Position numbers and translations under genes: made by a program. From NCBI RefSeq assembly GCF_020745735.1, contig NC_083448.1:12584006-12648005 (forward strand): a DNA stretch of 64,000 nt, read 5' to 3'. The notes under the pieces were generated by a model that worked only from the letters and a program-made list of their open reading frames with translations, did no database searches and had not been told where the DNA came from. This document shows, in pieces, positions 15,298 to 55,640 of the stretch. Source of the DNA: Hemiscyllium ocellatum. Taxonomy: Eukaryota. Positions within the stretch are counted from its first letter, which is position 1. The number at the start of each line of letters is the position of its first letter.

Positions 15298-15615
15298 TCA
15301 GAGAATCCCTACTGTATGGAAACAGGTCCTTCAGCCCAACAAGTTCACACTGACTCTCCGAAGAGTATCTCACCAAAACCCTACCCTTTTTGTCTACATT
15401 TACCCTAAGCTAACACACCCCTGAACATTATGGGCAATTCACCTGACCTACATATCTTTGGATTGTGGGAGGAAACCGGAGCACCCAGAGGACACCCATG
15501 CAGACACGGGGAGAATGTGCAAACTCCACACACACAGTTCCCTGAGGTGGGAATTGAACCCAGGTCTCTGGTGCTGTGAGACAGCAGTGCTAATCACTGT
15601 GCCACCGTGCCGCCC
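15298..15615 (-). mobile_element. HE1/V-SINE-type SINE
   Basis: Reverse complement begins gggcggcacggtggcacagtg (tRNA-like head); central tgtgggaggaaaccggagcacc domain. Confidence 0.85.
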
Positions 15616-15794
15616 AAGTAAACAGTTTTGGGCCTCTTATCTAAGGAAAGATGTCAGGCTTAGAAGCAGTTGAAATAAGTTTTACCACGTTGATTCTCGG
15701 TTTGGAGAGATTGCGTAGTTTGGGCGTGTACTTGTTGGAATAAGGGATTGCATATTTCAACTGGAGATAAGGAAGAATTTATTTTCTGAAAGGT

Positions 15795-19729: not shown

Positions 19730-19790
19730 ATGAGTTTAAGGAGCAGAGAGTGGCAATTCCTGTTTCTCACCTTGGCTGTTGTACTGAAAG
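19730..19790 (+). CDS. ASTL-like exon 1 (signal peptide)
   Basis: [20 protein letters not shown], phase-1 donor gtagtg; 86-nt intron with CTAAT branch point. Confidence 0.6.
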
Positions 19791-22700
19791 GTAGTGGCAG
19801 TTTTCTTTTCACTTTCTCCTCTGAGCAAAATATTCTAATCTCTCTGTTGTAACAACTGTCTCTGTAAATACTGCAGCAGTCAGACAGAGCGAGGTTAAGA
19901 AGCAAAATAACAGCTTTCTTCTGGATACCATTCAGACCAAGAGGATCCTTAGAGCAGAGGATGCAATTGTCAGGATTAACCAGCGTAAGTTCACTCTGTT
20001 TCATTCGGATTAAACTATCCTTTCGCAACGGCCAGGCAACTGTTGTTGGACTGTGGTTTTCCCTCCATTGAATAATTGACTTCTTTAACCACATGAAATC
20101 CAGAGATCGATTGCTCTTTCCAATTGCCACGACAACTTCTCCAACAATGGAAATGCTGTTCAGAAATTTGTCCACTCCCAAATGTAGTTTTTTGCAACAA
20201 ATCAAACTGAATCCTTAATCCAAATGTTTCATTGCATTGTTGTTTTGTAAATTGCTTTGTTGGTAGTGTAGTTATTCTCTGGATACCTGCTGTTTGCTAC
20301 ATCACCTTGGACTAATGGATCAAGCAATGAACATTTGTTCTCCTGCTTATAGGAATATTTCGATATGAAAAACCATGGAGGAACTTCCTCATTGAAGGTG
20401 ACATCGTCAAACCTGTAAGTTCCTTTCATTTTTATTTTATCTTTTTAGTGATGAATGTGGGATGATCCGTGGTCCCCTCTAACTAAGAGAGGGTGCATTA
20501 TGTACTCTGTTGATGCTGATCATATTTTGTTATTCTGCCAGTAGAAAATGTCTTACTGTTTGATGCAACATGATGTTTGTTTTTCACATCTTTAAGTTTG
20601 ATTGTTTCATTCCATTTTACTGTTGACCAGACAAATGCAATCACACTGATTCTTTGGATTTTGCAATATTTTGATAGAGAGGCATATTAATTTTAAAATT
20701 TAAATCTCTGGTCCTTACGTTGCAAGTGTATCCCATCTGTGGGAGGCTATGTGAATGGAACTTAACTGTCTTCTTTCCCCCTTCAATCAGCTCTGGAGGA
20801 ATGCTGTGGTGTCTGACACCAGGACATGGCAGAAATCCATAGATGGGATGGTGAGAATTCCATATGAAATATCACAACAGTATGGTAAGTACTGCATGAA
20901 AACATGGCTTATAAATCATGGTCTTCACGAAAAAACAAATTGGAAAAGCTGTGGTATTGCTCAGCACAGTTCAGCTTGGGTTGTGACTGATTGCACATGT
21001 TGGCGGTATGAATCATTCTTATGGGGAGATCCAGCAGCTGGTCTTCCAGATCCCCTGGTTGCACACCTCAATGGACTTACCAAGATTGACTGAGGCCAGA
21101 AACCAAGAATTCCTCCTTTCTCAGTTCATCAGTACCCATCTGAACATCTGAATGCTGATGCTGGTGGTATGTGAGAGTCCCAGTTACTTTCACCTTTGTA
21201 CATTTTCTAGTGCTTCGTAAGTAACTCTTATCACTTTTTCTCCCACTTGCCACGTGGTTCTGACCTCTTGTATATTTTTCAACATGTATGTGTGCTCCAT
21301 AGCCATTCATTTTTCAGATTATTGACAGAAGAGGTCTTTCTGTCTCTGCTGGAAACGTGCTGTACCTTCAGTCATTTGCTTTGAATCCCTCCTTTCAAAT
21401 CTTGAACTTTGTGGATTTCTATTTCACTGAGCCTGTGAGTTGTTGAAATAATGGTCAGTTTTTGGAAGGATCACAGCTGAATCTGACTGCTGTTCTTGTG
21501 CAGCATCCACACTCCACAGACCAATCGAAAAAAGAAATTCACCCAATTTAATTCTCTTTGTAGCAGTAACTCTTGTAACACCATACTCCATGTTCTGGGT
21601 TGAAATGGCTCACTAAACATCAAGAAGACATGGTAGTTGAGATTGCCCTGCTGACAATGTTCAAACAGATCAACTGGGACTTTTGCAGGAAGCCTCAACA
21701 TTGAATTTTGTTGGATGACAGACTGTTGTAAACACACCCTAGTCTTGTCTCCACACCTTTGCACTTTCTTTGACTCATGGAATAATGGTCTGGAATGTGA
21801 AAATTGACAGAGATTAATTGACTCTGAATAAGTTTTTAATTTGTCAATGAAACAGTCATGTCTAAAGATCTTTGATAGCATCCAACCTGATGTTTACTCA
21901 TCACAGTACATACATCTCTCACCCAGTGATAAGCTCTTCGTTGAATACGCACATGTTGCATGGACAGGAAATTTTGGTTTATGCACTAATGATCTATTAA
22001 ATCCAGCAGACAGAGAGAAAACAGAGAACCACAGGCCACTTAATCTGATAGGAAAGCGCTAGAACCTTTGGAAGAGATCTGAGCATTGCACTTGGAGAAC
22101 CATCATATTCAGCTAATGTTTTTTCTGAAGGCAAGCTATGTTTTGCCAAATGAATTTGAGTGTTTGAACTTGTAAGTTATAGGATGGTTTGCTGAACATA
22201 TGGAGTTTGATGGACATAAAGAGGCAGCAAAGACATATACTCAGCTTGAGTAAGTGGGCAACAAATTGGCAAATGGAATATAGCAAAGGAAAGTGAGGTT
22301 ATTCACTTTAGTTCTCAGTATAGAGCCACAAAATATTTTTAAAAGACGTGAAGTTTACTATTATTGTTGGGATTGGATTTCAGTATACAAATACGAGGCA
22401 AATAAATTTGGCATGCTGATGCAACAATGAATAAGGAAGATAAATAACACATTCATCTTTCTTGCAAGTGGATTGGGAGGAAATAAAATGTATAAAGGTA
22501 AAAATAGGAATAAAAATGCGTGCTGCATTTCCACAGTCCTTTGTGACACCATATCTGCAAGATAGTGTATGGTCTCCATCTTGAAGGAATAATCACATAG
22601 GAGGCAGTATGTTTCCCAAAAAGAGGGGTTGTCCTGTGATGATGAAGGATTTAATTGAGTCTACATTCTCTGGGGGTCAGAAGAAGGAGAGTTGATTATG

Positions 22701-25700
22701 TTGAAAAATATAAGATTCTGAGGACCTTGCTGGAATAGATCCTGAAAGATTGCATCTCTTGGCTCATGAAACAAGAGCATAGGGCACAATCTCAGGTTGA
22801 GGGACTGACCATTTAGACCAAGGTGAGGAGAAACCCCTTTAGGCATATGGCTGTACAGAGGAACCTCGATTATCCAACATTCGATTATCCGAACAAGATC
22901 GTAAGTCCCAATGCTTGGTTAAACTGTGTTATTCGGCATTCGATTATCCAAATGAAATACTCCCCGCCTGTGTCCTTCGGATAATTGAGGTTCCGTTGTA
23001 AATCAGTGAAATGATCTACTCCATTGTTTGATATATTTAATGCTGAGATAATCATTTGTCTCTGGGGAAGTAAAGGTATCTGAGGAGCAGATTTGAAAGA
23101 AAGGTTGGGGTTTAGCCTCACTCATGATTGTATTGAGTGGTGGAACAGACTGAGAATCGTAGATTGTAGAATCTCCTCAGTGTGGAAAGAATTCTGCCCA
23201 TCGAGTCTGCATTGACACTCTGAAGAGCATCTCACCTTCAACCAGCCCCCCAATTCTATATTCATAACCCCCATTTACCATGGCTAACCAACCTAGTTTG
23301 CAGATCCCTGGACTCTACATGGCAATTTGTCATGGGCTTTCTGGGCCTTCAGTGTATCATTACTCTTATGTCTTTGGTTCTGAAGGTCTTGCAAGTCTAG
23401 CAAACTTAACATATGACAATGTTCTGAAAAACACAAGACTGAAAAGTCAGCAGAGACCTAAAATTATAAATGTGTCTTTTCTCCTTTATCTCTTTTCAGG
23501 TGTTAAGTGGTGTCCAGTGTGTTTCTATTGATATTTTCCTTATTTAAGATATTTTTTCTTTATTCAGATGAGGAAACTTGGAGCTCCATCAGTCGAGGTT
23601 TCAAAGACTTTGAGAAATTCACATGCGTACGCTTTGTACCTCACAGCGATGAGGAGGACTTTATTTCTATTCAGCCTATTCACGGGTGTGTACAACTGGT
23701 GGGACCAAAGTATAGCTGTCCTGAGAAATATTCTTCCTGATTTGTGCCATGACTCATTGCATCTGAGCTGTGTAATACTTGCACTTCATAGCTTCTGTTC
23801 CCTAGCAGTGTGATTGAGTGGTCAGGAACAGTGAAGCCCATCAAGTCCACCCTGATCTTCCAAACAGCACCCCACCCCTCCACCTTATTCCTGTATTCCA
23901 CTTTTCCCATGGCTAATCCACCTAGCCTTCACATCCCATGACACTGTGGGCAATGTAGCATAGCCAATACACCTAATCTGCCCATTTTTAGACTGTGGGA
24001 GGAAATCTGAGTACCCAGAGGAAACCCACGCAGACATAGGGAGAATGTGAAATCTCCACACAGACAATTACCCGAGTGTGGATTCAAACTCGGGTCCATG
24101 GCACTGTGAAGCAGCAGTGCGAACTGAATGACCAAACTGCCCTGAGGAGTACTGGTATCACTACCAATACAGGACGGAACTGTATTATCAGGACAGGTTC
24201 CACCTGAACCTGGGACCAGGATCCTAATGGAAAGGCTGAATGGAGTGGTCACAAGGACTCATTTAAGTGGGGGAGGGCTGAGTAGTGGTGACTAAAGTTT
24301 CCAGAACAAGGAATAAGACAATGTGAAAAAGATTAAGAATCTAACTACAGGCTCAGCAGATAATGGGCAACTACGAGAAGGGAGATGGTCAACATAGGAC
24401 TGAGGATGTTGTTCTTAAATACACCAAGGATGATAAATGGAATCATAGCACAGATGGAAGTTGGCGAGTAGCATATTGTGGACATCAGAGACATGGCTTC
24501 AAGGGGATTGGACTGGGAATTAAATATCCAACAATACGCGTTCTGTCAATGGGACAGGAAGGTGGTCAAAGGGGATGGGTTGCCTTGTTAATCAGAAGTA
24601 CAATTAAATTGATAGCAAGAAGTAATCTAGCGTCAGAACTGTGGAGTCTGTGTGGGTCAAGTTGAGGAATTGCAAAGGAAAGGGATCCTGATGTGACTTA
24701 GGCGTAGCCTTCTGAACAGTAGTCAGGATGTGAAGCAGAAAATAAATTCTGAGATTGAAAAGGCATGTATGAAAGACGTAATCAGAAGAATCATGGGGGA
24801 TCTTCGATATACAGGTTGATTGGGAAAATCAGGTTGGTGGAGGATTCCAAGTAAAGAAATTTGTGGACTGTCTAGGAGATTTGTTTTGGAGCAGATTATG
24901 GTTGGGCTCACTTGGGAGCATCACTCTCTTAGGGACATTCAGGTGAAGGAACCTCTTGGGGGTAGTGACCACAGTATTATAGAATTCACCTTGCAGTTTG
25001 AGAGGAACAAGATTGTATCAGATGTAAAGGTTAAAATGGGTTACAAAGAAATGTCAGAGCAACTGAATAGGGATTCTGCATGGTGAAAGACACCAGTAGT
25101 AGACCAAAATTTCAAGAGAGTCAGGGCAGAGGTGAGAGTGGTGGCCATCACTAAAGAGAAGGTGCTGGAGAAGCTAATAAGTCTGAAGGTGATTAAATCA
25201 TCTCGATCAGTTGGACTGCACCGCACAGTTCTGAGGAGATTATGGAGGCATTGGTGCTGATCTTTCAGGAATCACTAAAATCAGGAAGGGTCCGCTTACT
25301 GAAAAATATCTCATGTCACACCTCTGTTTAAGATGGGAGGGAGGCAAGATGTAGTGTTTGTAATGAGGTCAGTCAGTTGAACCTCATGGAACCTGAATTT
25401 CCTGATTGGGACTGTTAACCTGGTCCAATCAGGGAGCCTTGGCTAACAGATATAAAAACAGGAGTGTCAGGGGTTCTCCTCGCTCTGAGAGCTGGTTCTG
25501 TGGAAGCTGGAGCAGTGTCAAGGATTCCCCATGTGTAAATAAAGGAGTTATTTCACACAAGACAAGAAATTATCAGCCAGTTGCCTGACATTGGTTGTTG
25601 GTAAGATTTCAGAGTTCATTATGAAGAATGAGTTTGTGGAGTACTTGGAAGTACATGGCTTCAGAGAAGGGAGGTCATGCTTGACAAATCTATCAGAATT

Positions 25701-28700
25701 CTTTGTGGAAGTAACAAGCAACTTCAACAAAGGAGAGCCAGTGAACCTGATCTGTTTAGATTTCCAGATGGCCTTTGACAAGATGCCACACAGGAGGCTG
25801 CAAATTAAGATAAGAGCCCATGGTGTTACGGGTGAGGTACTCGAATGGAAAGAGGATTGGCAGACTGGCAAAAGACAGATAATGGGGACTAAGAAGTCTT
25901 TTTAAGGATGGCATCAGGCAACAAGTGGAGTTCCACATGGGTGTGTGTTGGGACCACAACTATTCATGTGATAACATGAACGATCTGAATGAAGGAACTG
26001 AGGGGATTATTGTAAGATTTGCAGATGACAAGAGGTTTGTGTTGAGGAGGCAAGGAGGCTGCAGAAGGACTCAGACAGGTTAGGACAGTGGGTAAAGAAG
26101 TGGCAGATGGCATACAATGTGGGAAGCATTGAGCTTATGCACTTGTGATAGGATGGATAGAGGCATAGACTATTTTCTAAATGGGTAGGTCTGAGTTAAG
26201 AATTCACTTAAGGTTAACATGCAGGTTCACTTGGCAGTTAGGAAGACAAATGCAATTATTGCATTTATTTTGAGAGGGCTCGAACATAAGAGCAGAGATT
26301 TGGTGCTGAGGCTGCAAAGTGGAGAGGTGCAGGCCACCCTGCAGGCAGTCTGCCTCTATTCCTGATGAAGGGCTTTTGCCCGAAACATTGATTTTCCTGC
26401 TCCTCGAATGCTGCCTGAACTGCTATGCTGTTCCAGCACCACTCTAATCTAGATCAAATGTTATGGGAGAGGCAGGCGAATGGTGTGGACAAACATAGCA
26501 ATCCCAATCAAATGGTAAGCAGACTAGATTAGCTAAATGACCTCAGTCCACTCTGATATCATATGGTTTGTAGTTTTATTTCTAGATGTGATTTCAGTGC
26601 CTCCCACCATATGACATTAGACAAATGAGAAAGGTAGCTGGTTAGGTAAAAGCCTTGGAATAATTTGTTAAAGGTGAAGTATTAGATTTATCGAATGCTT
26701 TACATGAACTTTATCCCAAATTGCTTTAAAACAAGTGAAATGTTCTTTGCCCTGGATATTAATTCTTGTTTCAGTTTTTGTCAATATGTTTAATGACCAT
26801 TTACTTCTGCCAATTAGGTGTTACTCATCTGTAGGCCGTGTTGGTGGAATGCAGCTCATGTCACTGAATCACCAGTGCCTGAAGAAGGGGAAGGGTGTTG
26901 TTGAACACGAGATTATGCATGCACTTGGCTTCTGGCATGAGCATGCGAGGAGTGACCGGGGCAAATACATCAAGATTGAGTGGAAGAATGTATGGCCTGG
27001 TAAAGTGTTTTCCTACTGTTAATTCCTTGCCCCTTGATACAAATGTGCATTATCAACCTGTCAGCAGCAAATTGAACCTTAAGGTAAGCTCATGGGTTTT
27101 CTGTGCCAGGGACCATGAAAAATATTCACAGTACACAAATAGGCATTTGGCCCAACAGATCTAAGTCTATGATATGGCATCTGTGAGCCTTCTGCTGCCC
27201 TTCGCTGTCGAATACTACTAATACATCTACCTATTCTTTTTTCCCTTTTCATCTGGATTCCCAGAAATGCATTTAAAGTATTTGCTTGAATGATACCGAT
27301 GGTTGCTCGTTCCACACGGACACTGAAAGTTTTCCTGAATTCCACCTTGAAAATATTTTGACTATCTTGCATTAGTTCTGGGGCTAATAACAAGTAGATA
27401 TGTCTTTTCCACTGCTTCAGAATGAAACCATTTAATAATCATGAGGACTTCCATACGATCAATCCCTCCAGTACCTGAAAGAAGCACTCATTAAGCCCAG
27501 ATCTGCCCCAGTACTGCAATATTTACTTACACACCTTTCTTTGGAAGTGTAGTCAGAGAAGGGCAAAGCAGCTTTGTACCAATCAAACGTTTCTACAAGA
27601 TGTGTGAATCTGAGAAAAAAGCTGCGATAAACTGGATTAATCACTATTGAAAGAGAAGAGTGATTAAAGTTCAAGCTACTAGACTGGAATAAATCTGCTG
27701 ACTTGTTGGTTGCCCTGTGATTTTTAGTAGAGGTTTTCTTTCGTTGATCAGAACATGCTGAAGGACAAAAATATCTCAATGAAGTATAATTGTGTTTCAC
27801 TCATGTGTACCAGTGACTTCCTGGCTTCTGTTTCAGGTTATGAACATAATTTCTTGAAACAAACCACGAACAATCTCGAGACCAAATATGATTATGGCTC
27901 CATTTTACACTACAGCAGGTGAGAATAGTGCCGAGGTGGTATATGGGAGATGGTAAGCTACTTCTCTCTCTCCTTATACCTTTATGTGGAGGAGCAGCAG
28001 TCTGAACAGTATCACTGGAACTTGTAATGCATTCACGTCTGTTGCAACACCTTGACATGAGATGCAGTTTTTGCAGTTCCTGCGATTCTTAATCTGCATG
28101 TTAGCCACAGCTTTGTATTCACTGTAAACTTGAACTTAACCAAAACTTACGTGAATATTTTAAATTACATCAAATCCATTTACTCATCACCCTTGTGTTA
28201 GCTGGCTGACATTAGCCCACAGTCTAGCAATGCTGTTGACAAAGATTCTTGATTGTTGCTTTCCTGTACCCCCTCCTTATCTCTGATACTTTCTCCCACC
28301 CAAAAACTCTCCAAACTGTCTGCTTCGCACTAATTCTGCATCTTGGGCCTCCTTGATTTTCATTGCTGCACCATTTCTTGTTGCTTGTGGGCAGAATGGC
28401 TGCTCAGTGGTTAGCGCCAGGGACCCGGGTTCAATTCCACCCTCCGGCACTGTCTGTATGGAGTTTACAGTTCTTCTCGTGTCTGCTTGGGTTTCGCGTG
28501 GGTGCTCTGGTTTCCTCCCACAGTCCATTGATGTGCATCTCAGGTGGATTGGCCATGGGAAATGCAGGGTTACAGAGATTGGACAGGGTTAGAGGGGGTG
28601 GGTCTGCATGGGATACTCTTTGGAGGGTGTGTGGACTTGATGGGCCAAATGGCCTGCTTCCACACTGCAGGGATTCTGTGAATAAACTTGTGCCCTGTGT

Positions 28701-31700
28701 TTTTGAATTTCTTCCCTACTTTTCTGCTTATTTATAAAGTAATTCTTTAAATGTCCTCCTCTGAGCAAGCTTTTGGCGAAACCGTGGAGGAGCATATAAG
28801 TACAAGAGATAAAGTTAAAAAGGAAATTAAGAGAGCAAAAAGCTAGCATTAGAAAGTAATGGAATGTAAAATAAAGGAAAGAATGTAGATATTTTACAAG
28901 TAAATTAAGATTGCAAAGTTACTTAGGGAAAGAGTCGAGCCATTCAGGATTATGCTGATAATTTGTGCATGGGGCAATAGGACTTGGGCATAGTTCCATA
29001 TGAATATTTTATGTCAGTATTCACTCATGAAAGAGACAGTGTGGGAAGAGCAATGAAGGAGAAGAATTGTGATTTACCTCAAGGAATTGACACAGAGAGG
29101 AGATTTGGATCGACTTTAAAGTCGATATATCTCTTGGGCCTGATGAAATGTAACCCAGGCTGTTGAGTGAAGCAAGTGAGGAAACAGCAGGAAATAATTT
29201 TGAGTTTCTGTCTGGCCACAGAAGAGGTGCCAGATGGCTGGTGGACAGCCATTGTGGTACTGTCATTAAAGAAGGGAGCAAGGGAGAAACTAAACTCCAA
29301 GCTAGTTAATTTAATGTGTGATGAGGAAACTATTGCAAACAATTCTGCGGATCAGAATCAAGCTGCATGTGGTCCAACATGTCAACAAGACCTTTGATAA
29401 AATCCCACATGGGAAACCTATAGCATGGAATCCAAGGAAATTTGGTTACTTGGAACTACAAATAGCCAAGTGGCTGGAAGCTGGAATCCAGGGATTCGTG
29501 TTGATGCCCTTGTTGTGTGTTGTAAATATACTTGATCTAGATTGAATGTAGGAGGGTTTATCACTAAGGTTGTGGACGATATGAAAGTTGGAGGATAGCC
29601 TTAGATTACAGGAGAATATAAATAGGCTGGTCAGATGGGCAATCATTGACAAATGGAATTCAATCGAGATAATCGTGAGGTGATGCACTTAGGTGGGTCA
29701 AAAAAAGGCAAAGGAATACATGATTAACAGTGGAACCCTGGGAAGCACCAACAATCAGAGGGACCGTGGTGTGCATGCCCAGTGGTCCCTTCAAGTAGAA
29801 GGACAGGAATATAAAATGGTTCAGAAAGCATGTGGGATACTCACCTTTTATTAGCTGAGGCATAGGGTTTAACAGCAGGGAGATGACACAGGAATTGTAT
29901 CAAAGATTAGTTAGGCTGCATTAGTGTATTGTGTGCAGTTGTGGAATACAAATTATAGGGGTGAAGTGATTGCAGTGGAGAGGGTCCAGAGGAGATTGAC
30001 TAGGATGTTGCCTGGGCTGGAGACGTTTACTTAGGAAGAGAGATTGGACAGACTGGGGTTGTTTTCCTTCAAGCAGAGGAGACTGAGGCGGACATGATTG
30101 AGATATATAAAATTAGGAGGGGCATGGACAGAGTTGACGAAAGAAACTTCTCCCTGTCATGGAGAGGATCAATGACTGGGAGCATCAATTTAAGGTTAGG
30201 GGCATTTAAGAGGGTGTGAGGAAAAATGATTTCACCCGGCGGATGGTGGGAATCTCGAACCTCCTGCCTGTCAGGTTGGTTGAGGCAGAAACCCTCAAAA
30301 CATTAAAGATGTATTCAGAGGTACACTTGTGATGCAGAGGTATGCAAGCCTCTGTGTTAAATGATGGAAAATGGAATGAGAATAGTTAGCTGGTTGTTTT
30401 TGACCCACGTTGGCCGAATGGAATGAATGGCATTTTCCTCTGCTGTGGACCATTATGGCTATGACTGTATCTACTCTTACAGCTTATGATGTGTTTTGGT
30501 TTCAAAATTTACTTGCTAATGCACCAGTGAAGCTCCTTGGGACTTGGTATGCCATTGATGTGATAAGATGCAAGTTTTCAAGACATGACTTAATATGCAT
30601 GAAAATTTTTGTTCAATTGTAGGACTGCATTTTCCAAGAATGGACAGCCAACCCTGAGACCACTAATAGATACAGACACTGTGATTGGCCAGCGAAACCG
30701 CCTGAGTGAGCTCGACTTGTTGAAGATTAATCGACTATACAACTGCACCATGCATCTCAAAGATAAGGCCAATGTATTGAAACGTAAGACTGCAAATCTT
30801 ATTTAACGTGTGTGAGAAACAAAGAAGAAAGTACTCAAAGTTTCTGCTGGTTTTGTTTGTGACCAGAACAGATTTGCATTTTTTGAGATTTTTCTGTTCA
30901 GATCCCACTTCATGTCATACGTTTCCAGTGATTTTTCTCACCTAACACTGGCTTTCTGCTTGTACCTGAATCCTTTATTTTGGATGGTGGGAATTAAAAC
31001 TTTTTTTTAAAACAGTGCTGATGGTTATTTAGGTTTTGCCAACCAAAATCTGATGTTGCTTTAAGCGTTCCTGAATTAGAATTCCTTGACCTGTCTCGTC
31101 TCTGATAAGTAGGTGCATTGTCCTAAGATTTTTAAAAGGCTTTTGTGGGAGCTTATTCCAGTTTTATTAAAAGATTCTGGAGTTGCAGCTTCAGGTGGTG
31201 ATTGTTTTGCCATTATGTGCAGGAGAGGAGGGTTCAATCCAAAGCTATGTCAAGAATCTATAAAACTAGGTTCACATTCATTGCCCCTTACGTGATCAGG
31301 GATAGAAAACACATAATTGTTGGTATTGCAGTTTGAAGATGTCTCTTATTCTAGCTAGATATGCGGGATAGTGTCCATCTGTTCTTCAATGAACAGTGAA
31401 TCCTTTTATCTGTCTGATAAAGAATGACATTGGACAAGGAGAATGGTATGTCGATATATCTCAGTGTTGGTACAGTCTGCTGCTTGTGTATGTTTCTAGC
31501 TTTCAGATATGGAAGTCTTTGTGCATAAGAAGGTTGTGATCCCATAACAAATGTTTGTGTTCAAACACAAATAGTAGAAAACTTTGTCTTATGATTTAAA
31601 TGCCTGGATCTCTTCTGATTTGGTTTTAACTGTTCAATATCAGTGACATAGCAGGAGCCACGATTAAGCACATTCTCTTCAATTCCAATCCATGTCCTTC

Positions 31701-34700
31701 ACATAACAGCCTTGAGTCACAGCTTTCTATCTGCATTGTTCATGTTTCTCTTTCTTCTATGCTTTTGGACATAATCATTTTCAATTGTTAACTTGGTCCA
31801 CTCATCTGCATTCAGGATTGTGCCCTTTTGAGCAAAAGAAACTTGATTAAGTGTTCAATACTGGCGAGGGTCTTGACGGTATAAATGTAGATAAGTTGTT
31901 AAAGTGGCTGATTGATGACCAGAGAACACACAGTGAAGGTGATGAAGAAATAACATGAGGAACAGTTTTGTTTTTCTTTTCAATGCATTGTGTGGTGATC
32001 TTGAATTGGAGAGCTGGAAAAATATTTGGATGGGTAGAATATTGCTGAGCTATGGAAAATGAGCTGAGAACAAATCAGGTAACCTCCATGGCCATCAGGT
32101 CCGAAGCTCAGTTGAAAAGGTGACTGAAGTAGGTTAATTGTCAACTAAAAATCCTTCTAAAACATGTATAGCTAGCAAGAGGAGTGGAAATTTTTCATGG
32201 TTAGCCAGAACTGTGTGGTGGTTGCTGTGCAGTAACCATCCCACCTGCAACGTGATGGTGTTTTACACATGTCATACTCTGTGGCAAGCGTGCTCCTCAA
32301 GTTGAGGGACTACTAATAGATAGCTCCATCATGGATATTGCAGACTGAGTTGTTTCCTTCTATATTATCTCATAATATATAAACTGAATTTTGAAGTTGT
32401 AAATCCTGATTTAAACTATTCCATTTCCTTCCCTCTCATCCCACCCAAAACACCCTTAGGTCTTCCCTTGCTGAATGAAAGTGGTTCCTTGCGTGAACTT
32501 GGAAGAACTAAAGAAGCAGAGAGATTAAAACCTCTTTTAGATATTTCTGCTGAAACAGCTGAAGCAAGAGTTCACACCCCAGCACAGCTGGTGGTGAGTT
32601 TGCGTGAGAATGCGTCCACAGTAAATCAAACCATCGCCATTGTGCATGAATATCCCAAGTGCATTCTCCTACGCAAATGTGCACCTATTAGCCAACTGAT
32701 TAAGTCAAGGCCTGAAGTCTACAACACTTCTATCATCACAGCATTCAAGGGATCAGCAACTGAAGCCTCAGAGGGCCAGAGCAGGCCTATTAGTGCACAG
32801 ATCCATAAAGGAAAAGCTAAGACATTTCTGCTTTTGCCCTTTGCTCAGAATCCGATGACAAACTCACTGACAACTCACCCTTCTCTACATGTAATGTCTC
32901 CGACATTGGCGCAGAGGTCTCTGACTCGAGGACCTGCACTCTGCCCCAAAGCATGTGTCAGATGTTGTACCAAGGAGCATGTTTTGCATCCAAACAGCCA
33001 AAATCTAATGGATCATGTTGAACCATTGGCAGGAACTCCGCACACAGTTAAATCTGACTCCCAAACTCAAGCGACAGTGGGGTTTCTGGCTGACTTATTG
33101 ACCACTGGTCAGCAAGATCCTCGACCAGTCAGTTGGTCTGATGTACAAGACACTCATGCACAAACCAGCAATGTTGCTCACCAAGCAGTGCCGTCAGTTG
33201 GGCTGGTTCCAACTTTGACCAATTTGACTTATCCATTGATTATTCCTGACCTAATTCTAAACCAGAGCCATCTACAAAAATTACCTTTTCATTCTCTGAT
33301 CAGTCACACACAGAAGACTGGTCACTTGAAATCAGTGAATCCAGCCAGTCAGTTTAAAATGCCACCCAGGCCTCTGCAGTCCAGCATCTCCATAAAGGAA
33401 ACCATGGGAGTACCTGAGATTCTTTTCAGAGAGTTTCATAACAGAATGGTGACACAGAGAAAGGCACTGACAGTGTCCCCGTATAAAAAAAAGCTGCCTT
33501 TTCTTCTGAAAACTGGAAGCCCTGCTCATTGGAACAAGGCATTTAATTCACGTGACCGTTTGTTGACAGCCATACCTAACCCTGTGGGCACCCTACTGGT
33601 GTCCACCCCAACTACAGTGGGGGCATCCACTCAACCTGGTGATAACCTGTTGTTGTCCACTCCCCCATCGGAGACTCTGCCAGTGTCCACTCCTCCCACA
33701 GATACTCTGCTAGTGTCCACTCCCCCTGCGGACACTCTGCCAGTGTCCACCCACTCTGCAGAGACTCTGCCAGTGTCCATTTCCCCCGTGGAGACTCTGC
33801 CAGTGTCCACCCCTCCCACAGACTCTCTGCTAGTGTCCACTCCCCACGCAGAGATTCTGTCAGTGTCCACTCCCCCTGCAGACTCACTGCCAGTGTCCAC
33901 TCCTCCTGCAGACACTCTGCCAGTGTCCACTACCCATGCAGAGACTCTTGTAGTATCCACTCCTCCCACAGACTCTCTGCCAGTGTCCACTCCCCACGCA
34001 GAGATTCTGCCAGTGTCCACTCCCCCTGCGGACTCACTGCCAGTGTCCACTCCTCCTGCAGACACTCTGCCAGTGTCCACTACCCATGCAGAGACTCTTG
34101 TAGTATCCACTCCTCCCACAGACTCTCTGCCAGTGTCCACTCCCCCGGCAGAGATTCTGCCAGTGTCCACTCCCTGTGCAGACTCTCTGCCAGTGTCCAC
34201 TCCCACCGTAGACACTCTGTCAGTGTCCACTACTCTTGTAGAGACTCTTCCAGTGTCCACTCCTCCCGCAGACACTCTGCCAGTGTCCACTCCCGCTGCA
34301 GATACTCTGCCAATGTCCACTCTTCCTGCGGACACTCTGTCAGAGTCCACCCCCTTTGCAGAGACTCTTCCAGTGTCCATTCCCACTGCAGAAGCTCTGC
34401 CAGTATCCAGTCCCCTCACAGATGATCTGCCAGTGTCCACTCCCCCTGCAGAGATTCTGACAGTGTCCACTCTCCTCACATTCGTTCTGACAGTGTCCAC
34501 TCCAGCAGAGACTCTGCCCATGTCCACTCTCCCTGCAGAGGCTCTGCCAGTATCCAATCCCCCCACAGGTGATCTGCCAGTCTCCACTCCTCCCACAGAC
34601 TCTCTGCCAGTGTCCATTCCTCCTGCAGAAACTCTGCCAGTGTCCACTCCCCTTGCAGAGACTCTGCCAGTGTCCATTCTCTCAGCGGAGAGTCTGCCAG

Positions 34701-37700
34701 GGTCTACCCTCTCAGTGGAGACTCTGCCAGTGTCTACTTCCCCTACAGACACTTTGCCAGTGTCCACTCCCTCAGCAGACATTCTGTCAACAGCAATTCT
34801 CCCCAATGAGACCGTATTAGCATCCACCTCTTCTCCAGAGACATTCCTGGCATCCTTCTCCTTTGTGGCCAACAGTGCAGCAACCATCCAGTCAATAATT
34901 TCTCCATTTACTTTGACGACACGCAACAATCCTCTGACAATTAATCCCTTATATAATGTGCCTTTGATTTCTCCCACTCAGTCAGTGTTGCCTGACAACC
35001 TTGCTGTGGAACTGTTTTGTGACTTCGAATATGGTCTGTGTGACTGGGAACAATCCACAACAGATGATTTTGACTGGGTGCTTCATCGGTGCCAAACATT
35101 CTCAAGAGAAACAGGACCAAAACGTGACCATACGAAAGGCCAGTGCAAACGCCAAGGAGGTAAATAAAAATCTGATGAGTTTGGAGCCATTAACATGACA
35201 GCACAGAGGGAAATGTGGAATAGTGTTTTTTTTTCCAAAACAGACAGAGACTGGAGAAAGAAATGAAAGGGTCTGAGTATGTAAATCTGAAATAAGGTTA
35301 ATTAATGTTTAGAAATAGAATTTGTATTTGAGGTGTTTATTCTCCTGTCAAAGAGATTAAAAATTAGTTCACCGTTCAAAGGATGTGGATGTTGCTACCA
35401 TGATCATTTATATGTGCAGCCTTCCCAACATTTTTTCAGCCCTGTGGGTCAGTAGTTATGTGTTGGTCCAGTTAGGAATGGTTGGTAGATTTCCCCTCCA
35501 ATCAAGAATGAGTGAACCGATGGATTTGAGGTCAATCAGTTGTGATTATTTTTTCTGATGGTAATTTGCGATTGTAATATTGAATTAAGTGGGTTTCAAT
35601 TCACATAAAAGCAGATACTGACAATGCTGGACATCTTAAACAAACAGAAAAGATTCTGGAGAAATGCAGCAGGTCTGGCAGCATCTGAAGGAAAGTGACA
35701 CTGGACTTGAAATGTCACATCTAATTCTGTCTTCACAGACATTGCCAGACCTTCTGAGTTTCTCCAGCAATTTCTCTGCTTTGATTTCACTTCTCAAAAT
35801 GATGGAACTCATAGCTACAACTTAGTCATCCAGCCTCTGCATTCAGAGTCCAGTGATGTGACAGCTGTACTTCTGCACTGGAATTGTTGATTGTTAGGCA
35901 GTGGGCAGTCTGGGTCTCTGTTTATAGTAGTGTTCACTGGGAAAATGTCTTTGTGGATTTACAAACTTGAAAGTAGGAACAGAAGGATTTGCTGATGATG
36001 ACTGGTGTGGATATGCTCAATGGAACAAAGTAACGAAAGGGGAATTTATGATGGTGGGGCTCAAAATTCTTTGTGATTTGAAAGTGTACATTCAGAATTC
36101 ATAACAAGAACATATAAATTCAGAAGTGTCAAGAATTAGATAAACAGTCTCAATTCTAATCGATTTTTGGCTGCATATTTCTGATATTTTGACAGTAGTT
36201 GTGATCACATGGTGTGTTTGGTTAATTTTTCTTCGCTGCAGGTCATTATCTGTACCTGAAAGGTTCATATCCTCAGCAGAGTGGGGAACAGGCAGCACTC
36301 ATCAGCCCTCCACTGAGAGAACAGAAGTGTCTGACCTTCTGGTACAATATGTTTGGGAAACACATGGGTGAGTTGTGAGGCTCCGAGCAGTAAACTCTGG
36401 TCATAACCTGTAATAATTCATGGAAACAATTTGATTTAACATCTTGCCAGAATAGAACAGTGACATAACAAAACTGCTATTTATAACTCTGTGACATTTG
36501 GTGATAGGCAAATGCATGGAGAAAGCAGAGCAGGGAGGTTGAGAAGCAGTGCATGTATCTAGATAGTGCTTATGATGTATCAAGGGCATTGTGGAGGGGT
36601 TGGAGTGTGTTGCAAGAGCAGGTACTCCTGGTTTCTATTATGGTTTGGCCCAGATTGCTCTGTGAGGGTGTCAGAACTGAATTTTGGGGAAACAGCAGTG
36701 TAATCTTAGATTTACTTTTGATCCCATCTATTCAGCTACAAATTGCATTCTGTTTCTGGAAGCCTTTTAATCAGGGCACCACGAGGGGATTACTAAGTTA
36801 AAAATACAGGTGAAGGTTGGACCTGCTGACGGACTGTTTGAATCCATTTTCCTGCAGGTTCCATAAATGTATTCCTGAAATATGAACACACGACTTCCTG
36901 GCACAAGCTGTGGTCTGTCTCTGGAAACCAAGGCCGGAAGTGGCTCAGTGCTGAGATTGACATTTTCACTAATGGAGACAAGTTCCGAGTAAGTCAAAAT
37001 ATGATTTGTGTTTTGTTGTAGGAAAAGTGTCTAAATACAAGCTGTTGAAGAAATTAACCAATCCAAAAGTAAGAAGTAGTTAAACCAACCAGCATGCTTT
37101 GTTTTTTGTCATCTGCGGACTGTGCCATGCAGTGACCTGGTGGGTGATGTGGGTGCAATGAAGGCTGAGTGAGTATTTTCATGTACCCTGAAGCATCCAT
37201 CTGCTCACTGGATATTGATGTGATTGCTGTTTGTGGATTGAGACTCCAGCATTTGAGAGTGGAATTCTAGGTACCCATTAATGCAAGGCATTTTACAACA
37301 CACTGATGTGGGGTTGGGCAAACCGTTTAATATTTCCCTGGCCGTGAACCAAATTTAAGCTTGAGTTACTGACTCTGAAACATCTCTGTCCTTCTCTGCA
37401 CTGCTACAGGTCAACGCCAAGGGTACCAACCTGTGATTATCCTGGTGGGGTTGCAAGAAGAGTTTGCATTCCTTACAGAATGGCAATAAGCCTCTGAGGC
37501 AGGCAAAGACAGTTTAAATGCTTACCTTACAAAATATTCTTGGCTGCCTCTTTTTGAACAGATTGGTCCAAAATTTCCTGGACACTGATTAACCCAGAAG
37601 GACTTTACTGGCTGCTGAGACTGGCTGCCCATGATGCAGCAAAATGACCAGCAACAGATCATCTTTGGAGGGTGGTGCAAAAGGTAGCTTTCAGAGGCCA

Positions 37701-38160
37701 GCTCCTTGACCCACACCCATCCTTGTCTCTGATTATCCCCAAATGGGGCAATTAGCATCCTTCACTTCATGTAAATTGGAAAGTTGCTTGAAGTAAATGT
37801 TGGACCAGGCTGTGTAACTGAAGAGGGCTGTGTTCACATTGAGGATAACCATGGACTGGTTGAGCCAAGTGTCTTGAATCCCTCTTGTGTTTGTTCTCTA
37901 TTCATTTGCTGAGGTGAAGTAGTTGTCTCAATGAGCCATTAACATCTGTTACCAATAATTGATATTTTTCTCGTGGCAGATCTGACTAGTTTTTACCTCT
38001 TCAGGTGATTATCGAAGGTGTGCTGGGACCAAGCTATCAGAGCGATGCTGCAATTGATGACATACAGATCTACAGAAATAACTGTGACTCAAGCTGGAAG
38101 CACTGGAACCCAACCTGCAATCGAAGTCTGAAGAAAAGGGACAAATCGCACTTGGGTTAG
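19730..38160 (+). CDS. Ovastacin (ASTL)-like astacin metalloendopeptidase with mucin-like repeat region and C-terminal MAM domain, ~1326 aa
   Basis: 12 phase-compatible GT-AG exons: 19730-19790, 19877-19984, 20353-20414, 20791-20884, 23568-23685, 26818-26999, 27837-27918, 30623-30783, 32460-35159, 36242-36367, 36858-36988, 38005-38160 (3981 nt). Motifs: FLIEGDI propeptide switch, R/NA maturation site, [18 protein letters not shown] zinc motif, [17 protein letters not shown]...LYNC, then MAM (CDFE..CDW...DDFDW...GHYLY...CLTFWY...GNQG..W...AIDDI). The first two exons are less certain. Confidence 0.88.
19877..19984 (+). CDS. ASTL-like exon 2 (propeptide)
   Basis: ...EDAIVRINQ, donor gtaagt; resembles the ovastacin DIPAINQ segment. 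Confidence 0.7.
20353..20414 (+). CDS. ASTL-like exon 3
   Basis: [20 protein letters not shown] (astacin FEGDI aspartate switch). Confidence 0.88.
20791..20884 (+). CDS. ASTL-like exon 4
   Basis: [31 protein letters not shown]. Confidence 0.88.
22000..23150 (+). mobile_element. Highly degraded CR1 LINE, interrupted by a MITE
   Basis: ENHRPLNL, 'tggcaaatggaata' (WQME) and 'agggcacaatctcagg' remnants. Confidence 0.6.
22856..22998. mobile_element. Tc1/mariner (Tigger/pogo-like) MITE
   Basis: Inverted termini cagaggaacctcgattatcc ... ggataattgaggttccgttg, flanked by TA on both sides; degenerate inverted copy at ~61721-61862. Confidence 0.8.
23568..23685 (+). CDS. ASTL-like exon 5
   Basis: [40 protein letters not shown]. 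Confidence 0.92.
23830..24140 (-). mobile_element. HE1/V-SINE-type SINE
   Basis: ctgtgggaggaaatctgagtacccagaggaaacccacgcagac core, as at 15298. Confidence 0.8.
25350..25557 (+). mobile_element. Solo LTR (208 bp)
   Basis: TG...CA termini; 5-bp TSD caaga (25345-25349 and 25558-25562); internal CCAAT/ATTGG, TATAAAA and AATAAA. Confidence 0.8.
26358..26452 (+). mobile_element. Short Penelope-derived element with hammerhead-like core
   Basis: CTGATGA-agggcttttgccc-GAAAC, homologous to the Penelope 3' end at 59160-59258. Confidence 0.75.
26818..26999 (+). CDS. ASTL-like exon 6 (zinc-binding site)
   Basis: [60 protein letters not shown]. Confidence 0.95.
27837..27918 (+). CDS. ASTL-like exon 7 (Met-turn region)
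   Basis: [28 protein letters not shown]. Confidence 0.92.
28388..28680 (+). mobile_element. HE1/V-SINE-type SINE
   Basis: tRNA-like head gctcagtggttagc...gggttcaattcc; tail cacactgcagggattct. Confidence 0.82.
28770..30465 (+). mobile_element. Degraded CR1 LINE
   Basis: KTFDKIPH, 'gagggtccagaggagattgactaggatg' and other CR1 RT/3' remnants. Confidence 0.78.
30623..30783 (+). CDS. ASTL-like exon 8
   Basis: [53 protein letters not shown]. Confidence 0.92.
32460..35159 (+). CDS. ASTL-like exon 9: 2.7-kb exon with linker, PTS repeats and the start of MAM
   Basis: Stop-free 899-codon frame; acceptor tag at 32457-32459 after a pyrimidine tract; phase matches exons 8 and 10. Confidence 0.87.
33641..34860 (+). 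repeat. Coding tandem repeat, 30-nt unit (GAGACTCTGCCAGTGTCCACTCCCCCTGCA; [DE]TLPVSTPPA), ~40 copies
   Basis: Directly visible in both DNA and translation. Confidence 0.95.
36242..36367 (+). CDS. ASTL-like exon 10 (MAM)
   Basis: [42 protein letters not shown]. Confidence 0.9.
36858..36988 (+). CDS. ASTL-like exon 11 (MAM)
   Basis: [44 protein letters not shown]. Confidence 0.9.
38005..38160 (+). CDS. ASTL-like exon 12 (end of MAM, stop)
   Basis: [51 protein letters not shown]. Confidence 0.9.
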   Translation: MIIEGVLGPSYQSDAAIDDIQIYRNNCDSSWKHWNPTCNRSLKKRDKSHLG

Positions 38161-41813: not shown

Positions 41814-44800
41814 GTTAGACAGGGAGAGGGATAAAGATAAAAATAAAAATAGGGAAAGGGAAAGGCGAGTGTGATAAAGGACGGGATATTATGTTTGTTC
41901 TGGGTCAGAGAGAGTGAGTATCATGTACGACAGGATGGAGAGGGGAAAGTGGTGAGTGAGTCATGGAGCCCTGGAGGGGTTTGGAAGAAGATCTAGAAGT
42001 TTACTGTCTGTGTGTCTGCTGGGGAGAAAGAGGGAAGGTGGATGGGAAGAGGAGAGTAGGGGATGGGGAAAAGGGAGATAGGGTGAAGGGGAGAGGGAAG
42101 GAGGGTGGGATGGGTGGGGGGGGAAGACGATTGGGGAGAGGAGGAGGGGAAGAAGGTTGGTGAGGGAGTGGGAAGGATAGGGGCTTAGGGTATGGGTAGA
42201 GGGAGGGTGAGGAGAAGTTATGGGGGAGTGGGGAAAAGTGGAGTCAAGTAGGGTTGGACAACCAGCAGTTAACCCAAATGACTTGAATGGCAAATCTGAA
42301 GTTCAAGGTGTGTGGGGAGAACAGGTTAAGCAAGCAATCATTCTGGGTCATGAAAGCTTACAAGTGTAGCAAAGCATTATCAATCACTGCAAATGCCCAA
42401 AGACAGGATAGTATTTTTCTCAGATTATGTCTGGGATGTTGGCATTGCTGGCTGCACCACCATTTACTACTTATTCCTAGTTGTCCAAGAGAAGGTGGTG
42501 AAAATGTGTTGTTGGAAAAGCGCAACATTTTCAGCTCTGATGTCCAGCATCTGAAGTCCTCACTTTCTCCGGGAGAAGGTGGTGCTGAGCTGCCCTTTTG
42601 AATCACTGCTGCCATGTTATGGTAGTTCCACAGTACTGTTGTGGCAGATATTCCAGAATTTTAATGCTCTTGTTACCATTAGCAATACTCAGTGTGGTTC
42701 ATCTTGTGTACTGATGAAGAACGATGTGCTAGGAAGATTAAAACAATAAGACTTATACAAAGTAATATGCAGAATCCATATATGGAAGAAAAGTGATGGA
42801 ATGTGGGGTTGGAGTTGGACAAGGGGGGGCTTTGGTTGCAGCAAAGATGATGTCAACTTCTTGAAATTTTGACTAAAGATGCAAATATAAATTTTACGTT
42901 GCTTAGGCAATTGCAAGCCTCAGTTGGGCTGAACCAACTTTGATCCAGGAAAAAGCCATTCCTTTGGCACTGGAGGGAAAGGATCTCCTTGCCAGAGCAC
43001 GTACAGGATCAGGAAAAACTGCAGCATATGCTATCCCCATCATAGAGCATCTTCTTAACACCAAAAAGGTAATCAAATTATTAGATTGACTTTATTTGTC
43101 TTCATTTTTAATCATGCTAAATTTATCAATGTGATGAGTTCGATATATCTTCTTGAGCCTCTACTTGGCATTGAGGTCAACAAGTTGTCTTGGAAATTGC
43201 TGTTATGCTCCATGTCTCAACAGTACTTCAGAATTCCAAGGGTGGAGGATTTCAAAGCTTGGAGAGACCTATTTGTAAGGTGAAAGGACAAAGATTTAAA
43301 AAGACTTGGGTAATTTGTTTTTTTCACAGTGAGTAGTTTGCGTTTGGAATGAACTTTCAGAGGATGTGATGGAGGCAGGTACAGTTAGAACATTTTAAAA
43401 GACATTTGGATAAGTACATGAATAAGAAATACTTGCAGGTATTAGAACCCACTTGGCAGTTGGAAAATGTTTAGTTCGGGATTGTGGTCAGCATGGACTG
43501 ACCGGACCGAAGGATCTGCTTTTGTGCTGTATGACTCTGACTTTATGTTGCCCGTGTGTAGCTGATAATGGAGTTTGCATCTGCCTTCATTCATTGTTAT
43601 GAAGAGCTCGTTCTTATGTCAGGGAAGTACCTTTTGCGACCACTTGGCACAGGCTGCATGAGTTGTCAACATTGCAGAACAAAGTTATAATGAAGCATTG
43701 ATTTTCTGTCTTTGTTTAGTCAGTCTGCGAGCAAGCAGTGCGAGCTCTCATATTGGTTCCCACAAAGGAACTAGGTCAACAAGTGCTGCAGATGATCCGA
43801 CAACTCACATTGTGTTGTGCTCGGGATGTTCGAGTGGCTGATGTTTCGGGACAGGTGGATGTATCAGCACAAAGGTATAAAATATGAGTGCATGATTTTG
43901 GGGCACTTGCCTTCAGTATCATAACTTGAGTAAGTTCTCACTTACGACATTCTTTCAGGCCTATATTAATGGAGAAGCCTGACATTGTTATTGGTACGCC
44001 TTCTCGAATTCTGCTACATTTGGAACAGCACACCCTGAACCTCAGCACCACACTGGAGATGCTTGTCATTGATGAGGCTGATCTACTCTTCTCATTTGGA
44101 TTTGAAAATGATCTGAAAAACCTGCTGGGGTAAGTTTCTTTTTCTCAAAACTCCTATTGGTTCAGTGTCATCACAGAACTGGAGAGAGTGAAGATTGAGA
44201 CACTGTTGGAGTTATTGTAAAGGTTGACAGCCAGATTGCACCAATTTAAAGCAAGTTGCAAAAGAAGCAAAGACAACGTGTGGAATTTCTTTCAGATATA
44301 TGGCTGGGCTCTGAAATGCATTGTCTGAGAGTAAGTACAATTGGGGCTTTCAGAATTATGGAAAATTCAAGAGGGGCAAAGAGTAAGTGGAGAAAAGCTG
44401 GATTGTGGGATTCGTCAAGTTGGTCCTGCAAACTGCTCACAAGAGTGTGATGACCCAAGTGGCGCCTCCATGTTTTTATTTTAAACCAGTGTGTCTGGTG
44501 TACTGAGTGCTGGCGCTATGCTAATATTGCTACTTTCACTGCTGTTTTACTGGAGTCTCATGACCTCACCCCCCCGGCCTGTAATTATATTTTTGATTGT
44601 TACAGTATCTGTAACATTGAGGCCCTTTGGGGTTATGGTTGAGCTAAATGGATTGCTTGTCTTCAAGGCTTATTCTGTCTTTTTGCAGGCACCTTCCAAA
44701 GATTTACCAAGCATTCTTGATGTCAGCCACATTTAATGAGGATGTTCAGACATTGAAGGAACTGGTGCTTCATAACCCGGTAAGAAATCTTCTCAAATGC

Positions 44801-54659: not shown

Positions 54660-55640
54660 CACGAACCTATCCAGCTGCCTTCTAAATGTTGTTGTATCTC
54701 CAACATGGCCTCTGGCATTTAATTCCATACAAGCATCACCCTCTGAGTGAAAAAGTTGCCCTTAAGCTCCATTTTATATCTTTCCCCTCTCACCTTCAAC
54801 CTTTTACCCTCTTGTTTTAAACTTTCCTACCCTGGGAAAAAAAGACAATGTCCCTCATGATTTTGTAAACCTCGATTGGGTTATCATTAACCTCTGATGG
54901 TCCATAGGAAAGAGCTTCAGACTCCCCATTTAACTCAAAATCCTCCAACCTTAGCAATCCTTTTTGAATTCTTTAATGGGTGGCACGGTGGCTCAGTGGT
55001 TAGCACTTTTGCCTCACAGCACCAAGAACCCGGATTCCATTCCAGCCTCATGCAATTGTCTGTGTAGAGTTTGTACATTTTACTGTGTATCTGCGTGGGA
55101 TTGCACTGGTTTCCTCCCTCCATCCAAAGAATTGGTGAATCGGCCCTGCTAAATTGCCCAAAGTGTTAAGGGATGTATGGGTTGGGTGCATTAGGTAGGG
55201 GTAAATGTAGAGTAATAAGGTAGGGGAATGGGTCGGGATAGTCGACTTCTTGGCGGATCAGTGTGGCCCTGTTATGCCAAATAGACTGTTTCCACACTTG
55301 GGATTCTCTGAACAACTTTCTTATAGCAGGGATACCAGAACTGAATGCAATACTCTAAAAGTGGCTTCACTCATACGATTCAGCCTCAATATGAGATCTG
55401 AACTCCCATGGTCCATCCACTGACCAATTAATGCAAGTGTGCAATATGCTTTCTTCATCATTGTCTACAAGCAATTTCATTTTTTTAGTTTAGTATTGGT
55501 TAACACTTACCATGGCTCTCCTCACGTAAAAAAATCCTGTCTCGTTTTGCTTAACCAAAATGCAACACTTACCTAAATTAAACTCTACTTGCTCCTCTGC
55601 AGCCCATTGGCCAATGTAATCAAGGTACTGTTGTAGTGCA
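54660..55640 (-). mobile_element. Antisense CR1 fragment with an HE1-type SINE inserted at ~54977-55310 (+)
   Basis: CR1 3' reverse complement; SINE head gggtggcacggtggctcagtggttagcact. Confidence 0.78.

Follow-up and report, generated by a model that had tools for sequence, protein, structure and literature searches.

An ovastacin-lineage metalloprotease gene with a long stalk and a C-terminal MAM domain in Hemiscyllium ocellatum

Is a shark gene that joins an astacin-type protease to a MAM domain, across a long exon rich in proline, threonine and serine (PTS), a new kind of astacin or an older form of a known one? The gene lies on the forward strand of a 64-kb stretch of DNA from the orectolobiform (carpet) shark Hemiscyllium ocellatum (NCBI RefSeq assembly GCF_020745735.1, contig NC_083448.1, positions 12,584,006 to 12,648,005), hereafter the window, which is vertebrate DNA free of N runs. 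An earlier note, made from the sequence alone, had proposed an ovastacin-like protease with an architecture not recognised among characterised astacins. Our analysis points to a single gene for a secreted zymogen metalloprotease (M12A) of the ASTL/ovastacin lineage, with a stalk of ~850 amino acids (aa) and a C-terminal MAM domain. We read it as an ordinary ancestral form whose substrates likely belong to the egg coat, and assign this reading a probability of about 0.8.

Gene model and domain structure of the shark protein

We rebuilt the open reading frame (ORF) at positions 19730-38160 (+) and obtained 12 phase-consistent exons with a coding sequence of 3981 nt, encoding 1326 aa, from an ATG at 19730 to a stop codon ending at 38160, the sole stop in the frame (Table 1). 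All introns are of the GT-AG type and have good polypyrimidine tracts; three positions (19790, 19793 and 19799), each in phase 1, could serve as the donor of exon 1. The 12-exon ORF of the earlier note, its bounds and the motifs quoted there were reproduced exactly, and the intron-8 read-through stop that it had placed at 30806 was located. Beyond that stop, ATTAAA occurs at 30993 and 31166; as poly(A) signals follow both candidate stops, they do not discriminate between long and short products. No second astacin copy was found in the window, and an Rfam search of the window returned zero matches.

Table 1. Coordinates of the astacin-MAM gene, its exon-9 segments and its neighbours in the window
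Feature	Position	Strand	Description
Exon 1	19730-19793	+	Start codon; signal-peptide-like N-terminus with 10-residue h-region; N-terminus alignable to Pristiophorus model
Exon 2	19880-19984	+	Propeptide, part (INQ and FLIEGD lie within exons 2-3)
Exon 3	20353-20414	+	Propeptide; carries FLIEGD aspartate-switch motif
Exon 4	20791-20884	+	Start of astacin catalytic region (exons 4-8)
Exon 5	23568-23685	+	Astacin catalytic domain
Exon 6	26818-26999	+	Astacin catalytic domain; zinc motif
Exon 7	27837-27918	+	Astacin catalytic domain; Met-turn
Exon 8	30623-30783	+	End of astacin catalytic domain
Intron-8 read-through	30784-30806	+	Catalytic-only product would end ...LKRKTANLI; stop 30804-30806
Exon 9	32460-35159	+	2700 nt; linker, PTS repeats, spacer, first ~50 aa of MAM
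Non-repetitive linker (exon 9)	32460-33583	+	aa 291-664, 374 aa; 27% S+T+P; 6 Cys; 6 N-x-S/T sequons
PTS tandem array (exon 9)	33654-34786	+	30-nt unit, 37.9 copies; 150-nt higher-order unit
MAM start (end of exon 9)	35006-35159	+	~50 aa, ...DHTKG
Exon 10	36242-36367	+	MAM, continued
Exon 11	36858-36988	+	MAM, continued
Exon 12	38005-38160	+	MAM end, basic hydrophilic tail, stop codon
Antisense ORF	33631-34977	-	448 aa, across PTS repeats
Upstream neighbour, EMP24/GOLD (TMED4/9-like)	5517-5780, 10332-10487, 12050-12286	+	Ends ...FFEAKKLV and stop
Downstream neighbour, DEAD-box helicase	42907-43086, 43930-44130 and beyond	+	ARTGSGKT and VIDEAD exons

When Pfam was run on the separate exon translations, exons 5-8 tiled the Astacin profile (PF01400) at positions 21-51, 57-112, 117-144 and 146-189, and the last four exons tiled the MAM profile (PF00629) at positions 1-39 (exon 9), 44-85, 89-129 and 132-157 of 158. 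This tiling bears out the complete MAM domain that had been claimed; in a Chiloscyllium plagiosum relative (C. plagiosum P0001) the same profile was matched over positions 1-157 at E 1.2e-40. No Pfam domain other than Astacin and MAM was found in the shark protein.

The protease part has its catalytic residues intact and carries the expected zymogen and metal-binding features. An 18-residue motif in exon 6 satisfies the zinc-binding consensus HExxHxxGFxHExxRxDR, the aspartate switch in exon 3 is of the FxGD type, and the propeptide, with its INQ and FLIEGD motifs, is kept in the models P0002 and Pristiophorus P0003. The catalytic domain has four Cys, which would pair into two disulfides. The signal peptide was called from hydrophobicity alone. 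No transmembrane (TM) segment was detected, as no 19-residue window anywhere in the protein exceeded a Kyte-Doolittle value of 1.6, and the protein ends in a basic, hydrophilic tail, in agreement with the lack of TM segment and hydrophobic tail noted earlier.

The description of a ~900-aa mucin-like region would apply to only part of exon 9. The array of ~38 ten-residue repeats (416 aa, with 52% S+T+P and no Lys or Arg) fits it in composition, whereas the 374 linker residues that come first are not mucin-like in composition, and the remainder consists of a spacer of 58 aa between repeats and MAM start and the beginning of the MAM domain itself. A hidden folded domain in the non-repetitive linker was rejected, as Pfam was empty there and AlphaFold gave a mean predicted local distance difference test (pLDDT) score of 34.6 without secondary structure, from a shallow 7-sequence alignment; the model weakly suggests that this linker is disordered. 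Overall, the stalk is predicted to be ~850 aa of disordered chain with a PTS tandem repeat as its second half. From their sequence, the repeats are probably O-glycosylated. Repeat units are species-specific; even from one shark to another the array varies both in its unit and in the number of copies, as is typical of fast-evolving reproductive or mucosal proteins. On the minus strand, an ORF runs across the repeats (Table 1); as a gene it was discarded, being a by-product of the stop-free 30-nt periodicity.

The joining of protease and MAM in one gene is supported by the exon 8/9 boundary. Exon 9 starts in phase 1 at a strong acceptor, fitting the GTAAG donor of exon 8, and the peptide across the junction (...ANVLKR followed by LPLLNESGS) is identical in Stegostoma P0123, a 504-aa protein named "meprin A subunit beta-like" that comprises the protease and early linker, and is conserved in Scyliorhinus, Heterodontus and Pristiophorus models. 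Models from Heterodontus (1343 aa), Pristiophorus (1462 aa) and Callorhinchus (1162 aa) are full-length and carry both domains. Together, the junction peptide, the phase fit and the joined architecture in other species favor the single gene that had been proposed.

The Stegostoma locus is colinear with the window at ~75-80% nucleotide identity and contains all 12 exons, with exon 9 open for 1207 codons. Ratios of nonsynonymous to synonymous substitution rates (dN/dS) against Stegostoma were 0.08 for the catalytic domain, 0.22 for the MAM domain and 0.52 for the linker (dS ~0.3). The shark gene is under purifying selection, and its 2.7-kb ORF is far beyond chance, given these ratios and the open exon in Stegostoma.

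Lineage and taxonomic spread of the architecture

The phylogeny that the earlier note had called for was built by maximum likelihood from 63 catalytic domains (208 columns). The window sequence grouped with Stegostoma (100/98) within a chondrichthyan clade (100/99), which was sister to bowfin and tetrapod ASTL, including mammalian ovastacin (96/92). Meprins formed a clade of their own (100/100), and the C6 hatching enzymes fell outside the ASTL clade. These results support the earlier assignment of the catalytic domain as ovastacin-like and not meprin-like, and, together with the four Cys, its exclusion from the C6 hatching enzymes. When catalytic and MAM domains were concatenated (376 columns), a vertebrate ASTL-type clade of lamprey, bowfin, bichir, chondrichthyans, frogs and reptiles was recovered at 98/98, and in a tree of MAM domains the meprin MAMs split off at 100/100; the placements of lamprey and bichir were unresolved. 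By sequence, the nearest solved catalytic structures were two hatching enzymes from zebrafish and medaka, ZHE1 (3lqb, E 1.5e-55) and HCE1 (3vtg, E 7.4e-51), followed by meprins, and the nearest solved MAMs were those of MDGA1, a scavenger receptor, neuropilin, enteropeptidase and RPTP kappa/mu, not those of meprins. The trees support placing the catalytic domain in the ASTL/ovastacin lineage.

The architecture itself turned out not to be unusual; its wide occurrence in annotated non-mammalian ASTL-type proteins is one of the outcomes that the earlier note had named as refuting its reading. Searches of long proteins and a HMMER library search yielded at least 25 annotated proteins in which a long linker separates the astacin domain, at the N-terminus, from a MAM domain at the C-terminus. 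Lamprey, chimaera, sharks, bowfin, frogs, turtles, lizards and alligator are represented, and most of the proteins are named "astacin-like metalloendopeptidase" by NCBI or Ensembl. Among the fishes they include Petromyzon XP_032808037.1 (733 aa), Amia XP_066548851.1 (480 aa) and Callorhinchus A0A4W3HYC3; among the frogs, Xenopus tropicalis (918 aa), X. laevis (1100 aa), Spea XP_053319767.1 (979 aa), Pseudophryne, Mantella, Ranitomeya and Engystomops; and among the reptiles, Pogona (1853 aa), Podarcis, Rhineura, Alligator, Pangshura and Mauremys XP_044862643.1 (2786 aa). Among non-mammalian vertebrates the astacin-stalk-MAM layout is the usual one for the gene, already annotated and little discussed, and we read it as the ordinary ancestral vertebrate form.

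The linker between the domains ranges from ~35 aa in bowfin to >2300 aa in Mauremys. In lamprey, bowfin and the window, the linker and the start of the MAM domain share one exon, which ends just past DHTxG, and three more MAM exons follow with boundaries that match among the three. Because the exon layout is alike in these species, the linker exon appears to have expanded and contracted in a fixed frame since before the lamprey-gnathostome split. The MAM domain may have been lost more than once. The Anolis ASTL model has a single 4.7-kb terminal exon in which no MAM was detected, although Pogona, Podarcis and Rhineura carry one, and no MAM relics were found at E <= 1e-3 downstream of the ASTL genes of a bat (Molossus) and Anolis.

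Gene order links the tetrapod members of the family to ovastacin. In Molossus, ASTL lies between a DSPc phosphatase gene and a 7TM receptor gene (7tm_1), and the order in Anolis is identical; in Spea, the MAM-bearing ASTL lies between a START-domain gene and 7tm_1. We take these DSPc, START and 7TM flanks to be DUSP2, STARD7 and ADRA2B. The frog and lizard genes sit at the mammalian ASTL locus.

This distribution bears on the origin of ovastacin. Recent reviews confine ovastacin to mammals and name no MAM domain. One review of astacins refers to species where ovastacin is yet to evolve and reports that frog ZPA is cut by a fetuin-sensitive metalloprotease (PMC9848320), and a 2025 review holds ovastacin to be non-orthologous to non-mammalian astl genes (PMC12281054). 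We tentatively propose, at odds only slightly short of even, that ovastacin is not a mammalian invention, and that a catalytic-stalk-MAM ASTL would predate the lamprey-gnathostome split and sit at the ovastacin locus in frogs and lizards, with the MAM exons lost in mammals. If so, the protease that modifies the egg's coat would ancestrally have been tethered by the MAM domain and stalk, and a MAM-bearing ASTL would be the fetuin-sensitive metalloprotease by which frog ZPA is cleaved after fertilisation; this contradicts the 2025 review (PMC12281054).

A whole-word literature search for MAM and further searches on ovastacin found no description of MAM-bearing ASTL orthologues. The shark layout is not new among annotated sequences, and the form itself is undescribed in the literature searched; the earlier remark that it was not recognised among characterised astacins was fairly worded. 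What the comparison shows, as judged from sequence, is a seemingly old ovastacin lineage that would originally have carried a stalk and MAM domain, and that goes unmentioned in reviews of astacins and fertilisation, one of which states the opposite on orthology. MAM-bearing ASTL is a concrete candidate for the protease that acts on the egg coat in non-mammalian vertebrates, and offers a route to ask where the disordered tail that supposedly anchors mammalian ovastacin came from.

Proposed function and alternative readings

MAM domains are known modules for adhesion and oligomerisation. In the mechanism that we propose, the zymogen would be activated by removal of the propeptide, the MAM domain would tether the enzyme to matrix, to the cell surface or to itself, and the extended, glycosylated stalk would let the catalytic head reach its substrate. 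Given shared descent with mammalian ovastacin, the likeliest substrate class would be a ZP-type egg-coat protein processed at or after fertilisation. Mammals would have kept only a short disordered tail; in the mammalian protein as described, a signal peptide, a propeptide and the catalytic domain precede a disordered tail that possibly anchors the enzyme to the oolemma (PMC9848320).

Several observations weigh against this reading of the gene. Elasmobranch eggs are physiologically polyspermic, so the mammalian role in blocking polyspermy is not simply transferable; as polyspermy is tolerated, the purpose of the enzyme may be to remodel or harden the envelope and not to exclude sperm. The shark gene is also off the tetrapod ASTL locus, between EMP24/TMED-like and DEAD-box helicase genes. 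In both closest species, the carpet sharks C. plagiosum and Stegostoma, the NCBI annotation splits or truncates the gene, and the exon 8-9-10 junctions rest on gene models of other species and on conservation. An approximately unbiased (AU) test on the catalytic domain alone left groupings of shark with meprin (p 0.16) and of shark with hatching enzyme (p 0.11) unrejected. The trees, together with an AU test on the concatenated catalytic and MAM domains that rejected the shark-meprin grouping (p-AU 0.0045), led us to reject meprin affinity; hatching-enzyme membership was rejected from the Cys count (4 versus 5-8) and the tree position.

The Met-turn is a further point of this kind. It reads SILHY in the shark protein, so that relative to the astacin SxMHY pattern the Tyr, a zinc ligand, is kept and the Met is replaced by Leu. 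In the alignment, Leu at this position is common to 10/10 chondrichthyan sequences, lamprey, 6/7 sampled frogs (Engystomops being the one that does not match), alligator, birds and one mammal. Since it is shared so widely, the Leu appears to be a lineage variant and not a mark of decay; the residue that it repeatedly replaces is one that usually passes for invariant. Met is retained in most mammals, lizards and turtles.

Among the alternatives, the one that fares best keeps one gene and gives it several products, namely the long form together with a catalytic-only form made by intron-8 read-through and/or forms that skip most of exon 9 and bring the MAM domain near the catalytic domain. In Scyliorhinus isoform X3 (495 aa), the MAM domain comes straight after the early linker, the repeats and the greater part of the linker being absent; isoforms of 314-405 aa from alligator and turtle consist of Astacin and MAM without a linker, and in the Stegostoma model splicing out of exon 9 takes place from an internal site. 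In keeping with a catalytic-only form, ray models of 280-295 aa end 15-20 residues past NRLYNC, and ATTAAA signals lie beyond the read-through stop. All of these short isoforms, however, are computed gene models, and some are possibly artefacts of assembling or aligning reads across repeats. We regard several products as a serious possibility, on which we would nonetheless not wager.

A role outside reproduction is doubtful in our judgement. The enzyme would then work, for example, at a mucosal or epithelial surface, with the PTS stalk and MAM domain retaining it in the mucus, and both PTS stalks with MAM and the nearest solved MAMs named above fit such a setting, the former being typical of epithelial surface proteins. 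The trees, however, place the gene in the ovastacin lineage, and a protein named ASTL has been reported in sturgeon ovarian fluid (PMC11077782), a weak lead whose identity is by name only.

We consider it similarly unlikely that the shark gene and tetrapod ASTL are ancient paralogues (ohnologues) and not one-to-one orthologues, with different lineages having kept different copies. The TMED-like and DEAD-box flanks of the shark gene differ from the DUSP or START and 7TM flanks of bat, lizard and frog, those of bowfin and lamprey are different again from both, and the tree positions of lamprey and bichir give no guidance. Against this, searches found one ASTL-type gene per chondrichthyan, the catalytic tree tracks the species tree, and the relocation of one gene would account for the flanks just as simply.

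Two separate genes, an astacin gene of exons 1-8 ending at the 30806 stop and a mucin/MAM gene of exons 9-12, are very improbable: although C. plagiosum is annotated in this way, with the 705-aa "mucin-17-like" P0001 (94% identity over the search region) comprising the late linker, repeats and MAM domain only and no gene called within 10 kb upstream of it, and although ray ASTL models end soon past the catalytic domain, P0001 begins without a signal peptide at an internal Met where the window has Val, the exon 9 acceptor pairs with the exon 8 donor in phase, the junction peptide is kept in four other shark models, and the joined architecture and its intron positions recur from lamprey to reptiles. 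The full 12-exon model of a single gene corrects an annotation that is split or truncated in the nearest public records.

The surroundings of the gene are shared with the two closest species. Stegostoma and C. plagiosum have the same TMED-like and DEAD-box neighbours as the window; 3.4 kb past the MAM exons, C. plagiosum has a DEAD/Helicase_C gene encoding 552 aa. We take the downstream helicase of the window to resemble DDX56. An intron of the upstream EMP24/GOLD neighbour contains an insertion of a long interspersed nuclear element (LINE) reverse transcriptase at ~7000-9600, and a GC-rich tandem array at 1058-1519 (periods of 41/77/110 nt) gives rise to spurious long ORFs at 949-1912 without a Pfam match. 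RVT_1 retroelement fragments occur at 25543-25902, in intron 5 of the astacin-MAM gene, and at 57682-58353, and a dispersed repeat resembling a short interspersed nuclear element (SINE) occurs at ~15300-15620, 23840-24120 and 54980-55180.

Comparison with known astacins

Meprin alpha and beta share with the shark protein an astacin catalytic domain and a MAM domain. In them, unlike in the shark protein, the MAM adjoins the catalytic domain and precedes TRAF/MATH, EGF and TM segments (PMC9848320). This layout is not that of the shark protein, in which ~850 aa separate the two domains, and matches between the shark MAM and those of meprins reach no better than E 1e-8 to 1e-6.

The hatching enzymes are placed on the same deep branch as ovastacin (PMC9848320). 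The C6 hatching enzymes, such as ZHE1 and HCE1, differ from the shark protein in having 5-8 catalytic Cys in the sequences sampled, as opposed to 4, and in lacking both linker and MAM. Limulus LAST-MAM, Hydra HMP2 and coral astacins resemble the shark protein in consisting of signal peptide, propeptide, catalytic domain and MAM without a membrane anchor, but their MAM or MAMs lie near the catalytic domain with no PTS stalk, and they fall outside the vertebrate ASTL-type clade.

Mammalian ovastacin resembles the shark protein in its protease part. It belongs to the same catalytic clade (96/92) with 47-51% identity, and the two proteins share an Asp-switch propeptide, four Cys, the zinc motif and a disordered region past the catalytic domain. 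The gene layout is also alike: eight exons encode the protein from signal peptide to catalytic domain, and a tail exon comes next. Nine exons are reported for mouse ASTL (PMC12281054). Mammalian ovastacin differs, however, in having neither a PTS array nor a MAM domain (Pfam detects Astacin only), in its Met-turn, which is SVMHY in most mammals and SILHY in the shark, and in its flanking genes.

Close counterparts of the shark gene are the MAM-bearing ASTL models of non-mammalian vertebrates. These share its domain order and the intron positions at the linker and MAM exons, and their MAMs form one group with the shark MAM, apart from meprin MAMs. They differ from it in linker length and repeat units, and, in frogs and lizards, in lying at the mammalian ASTL locus.

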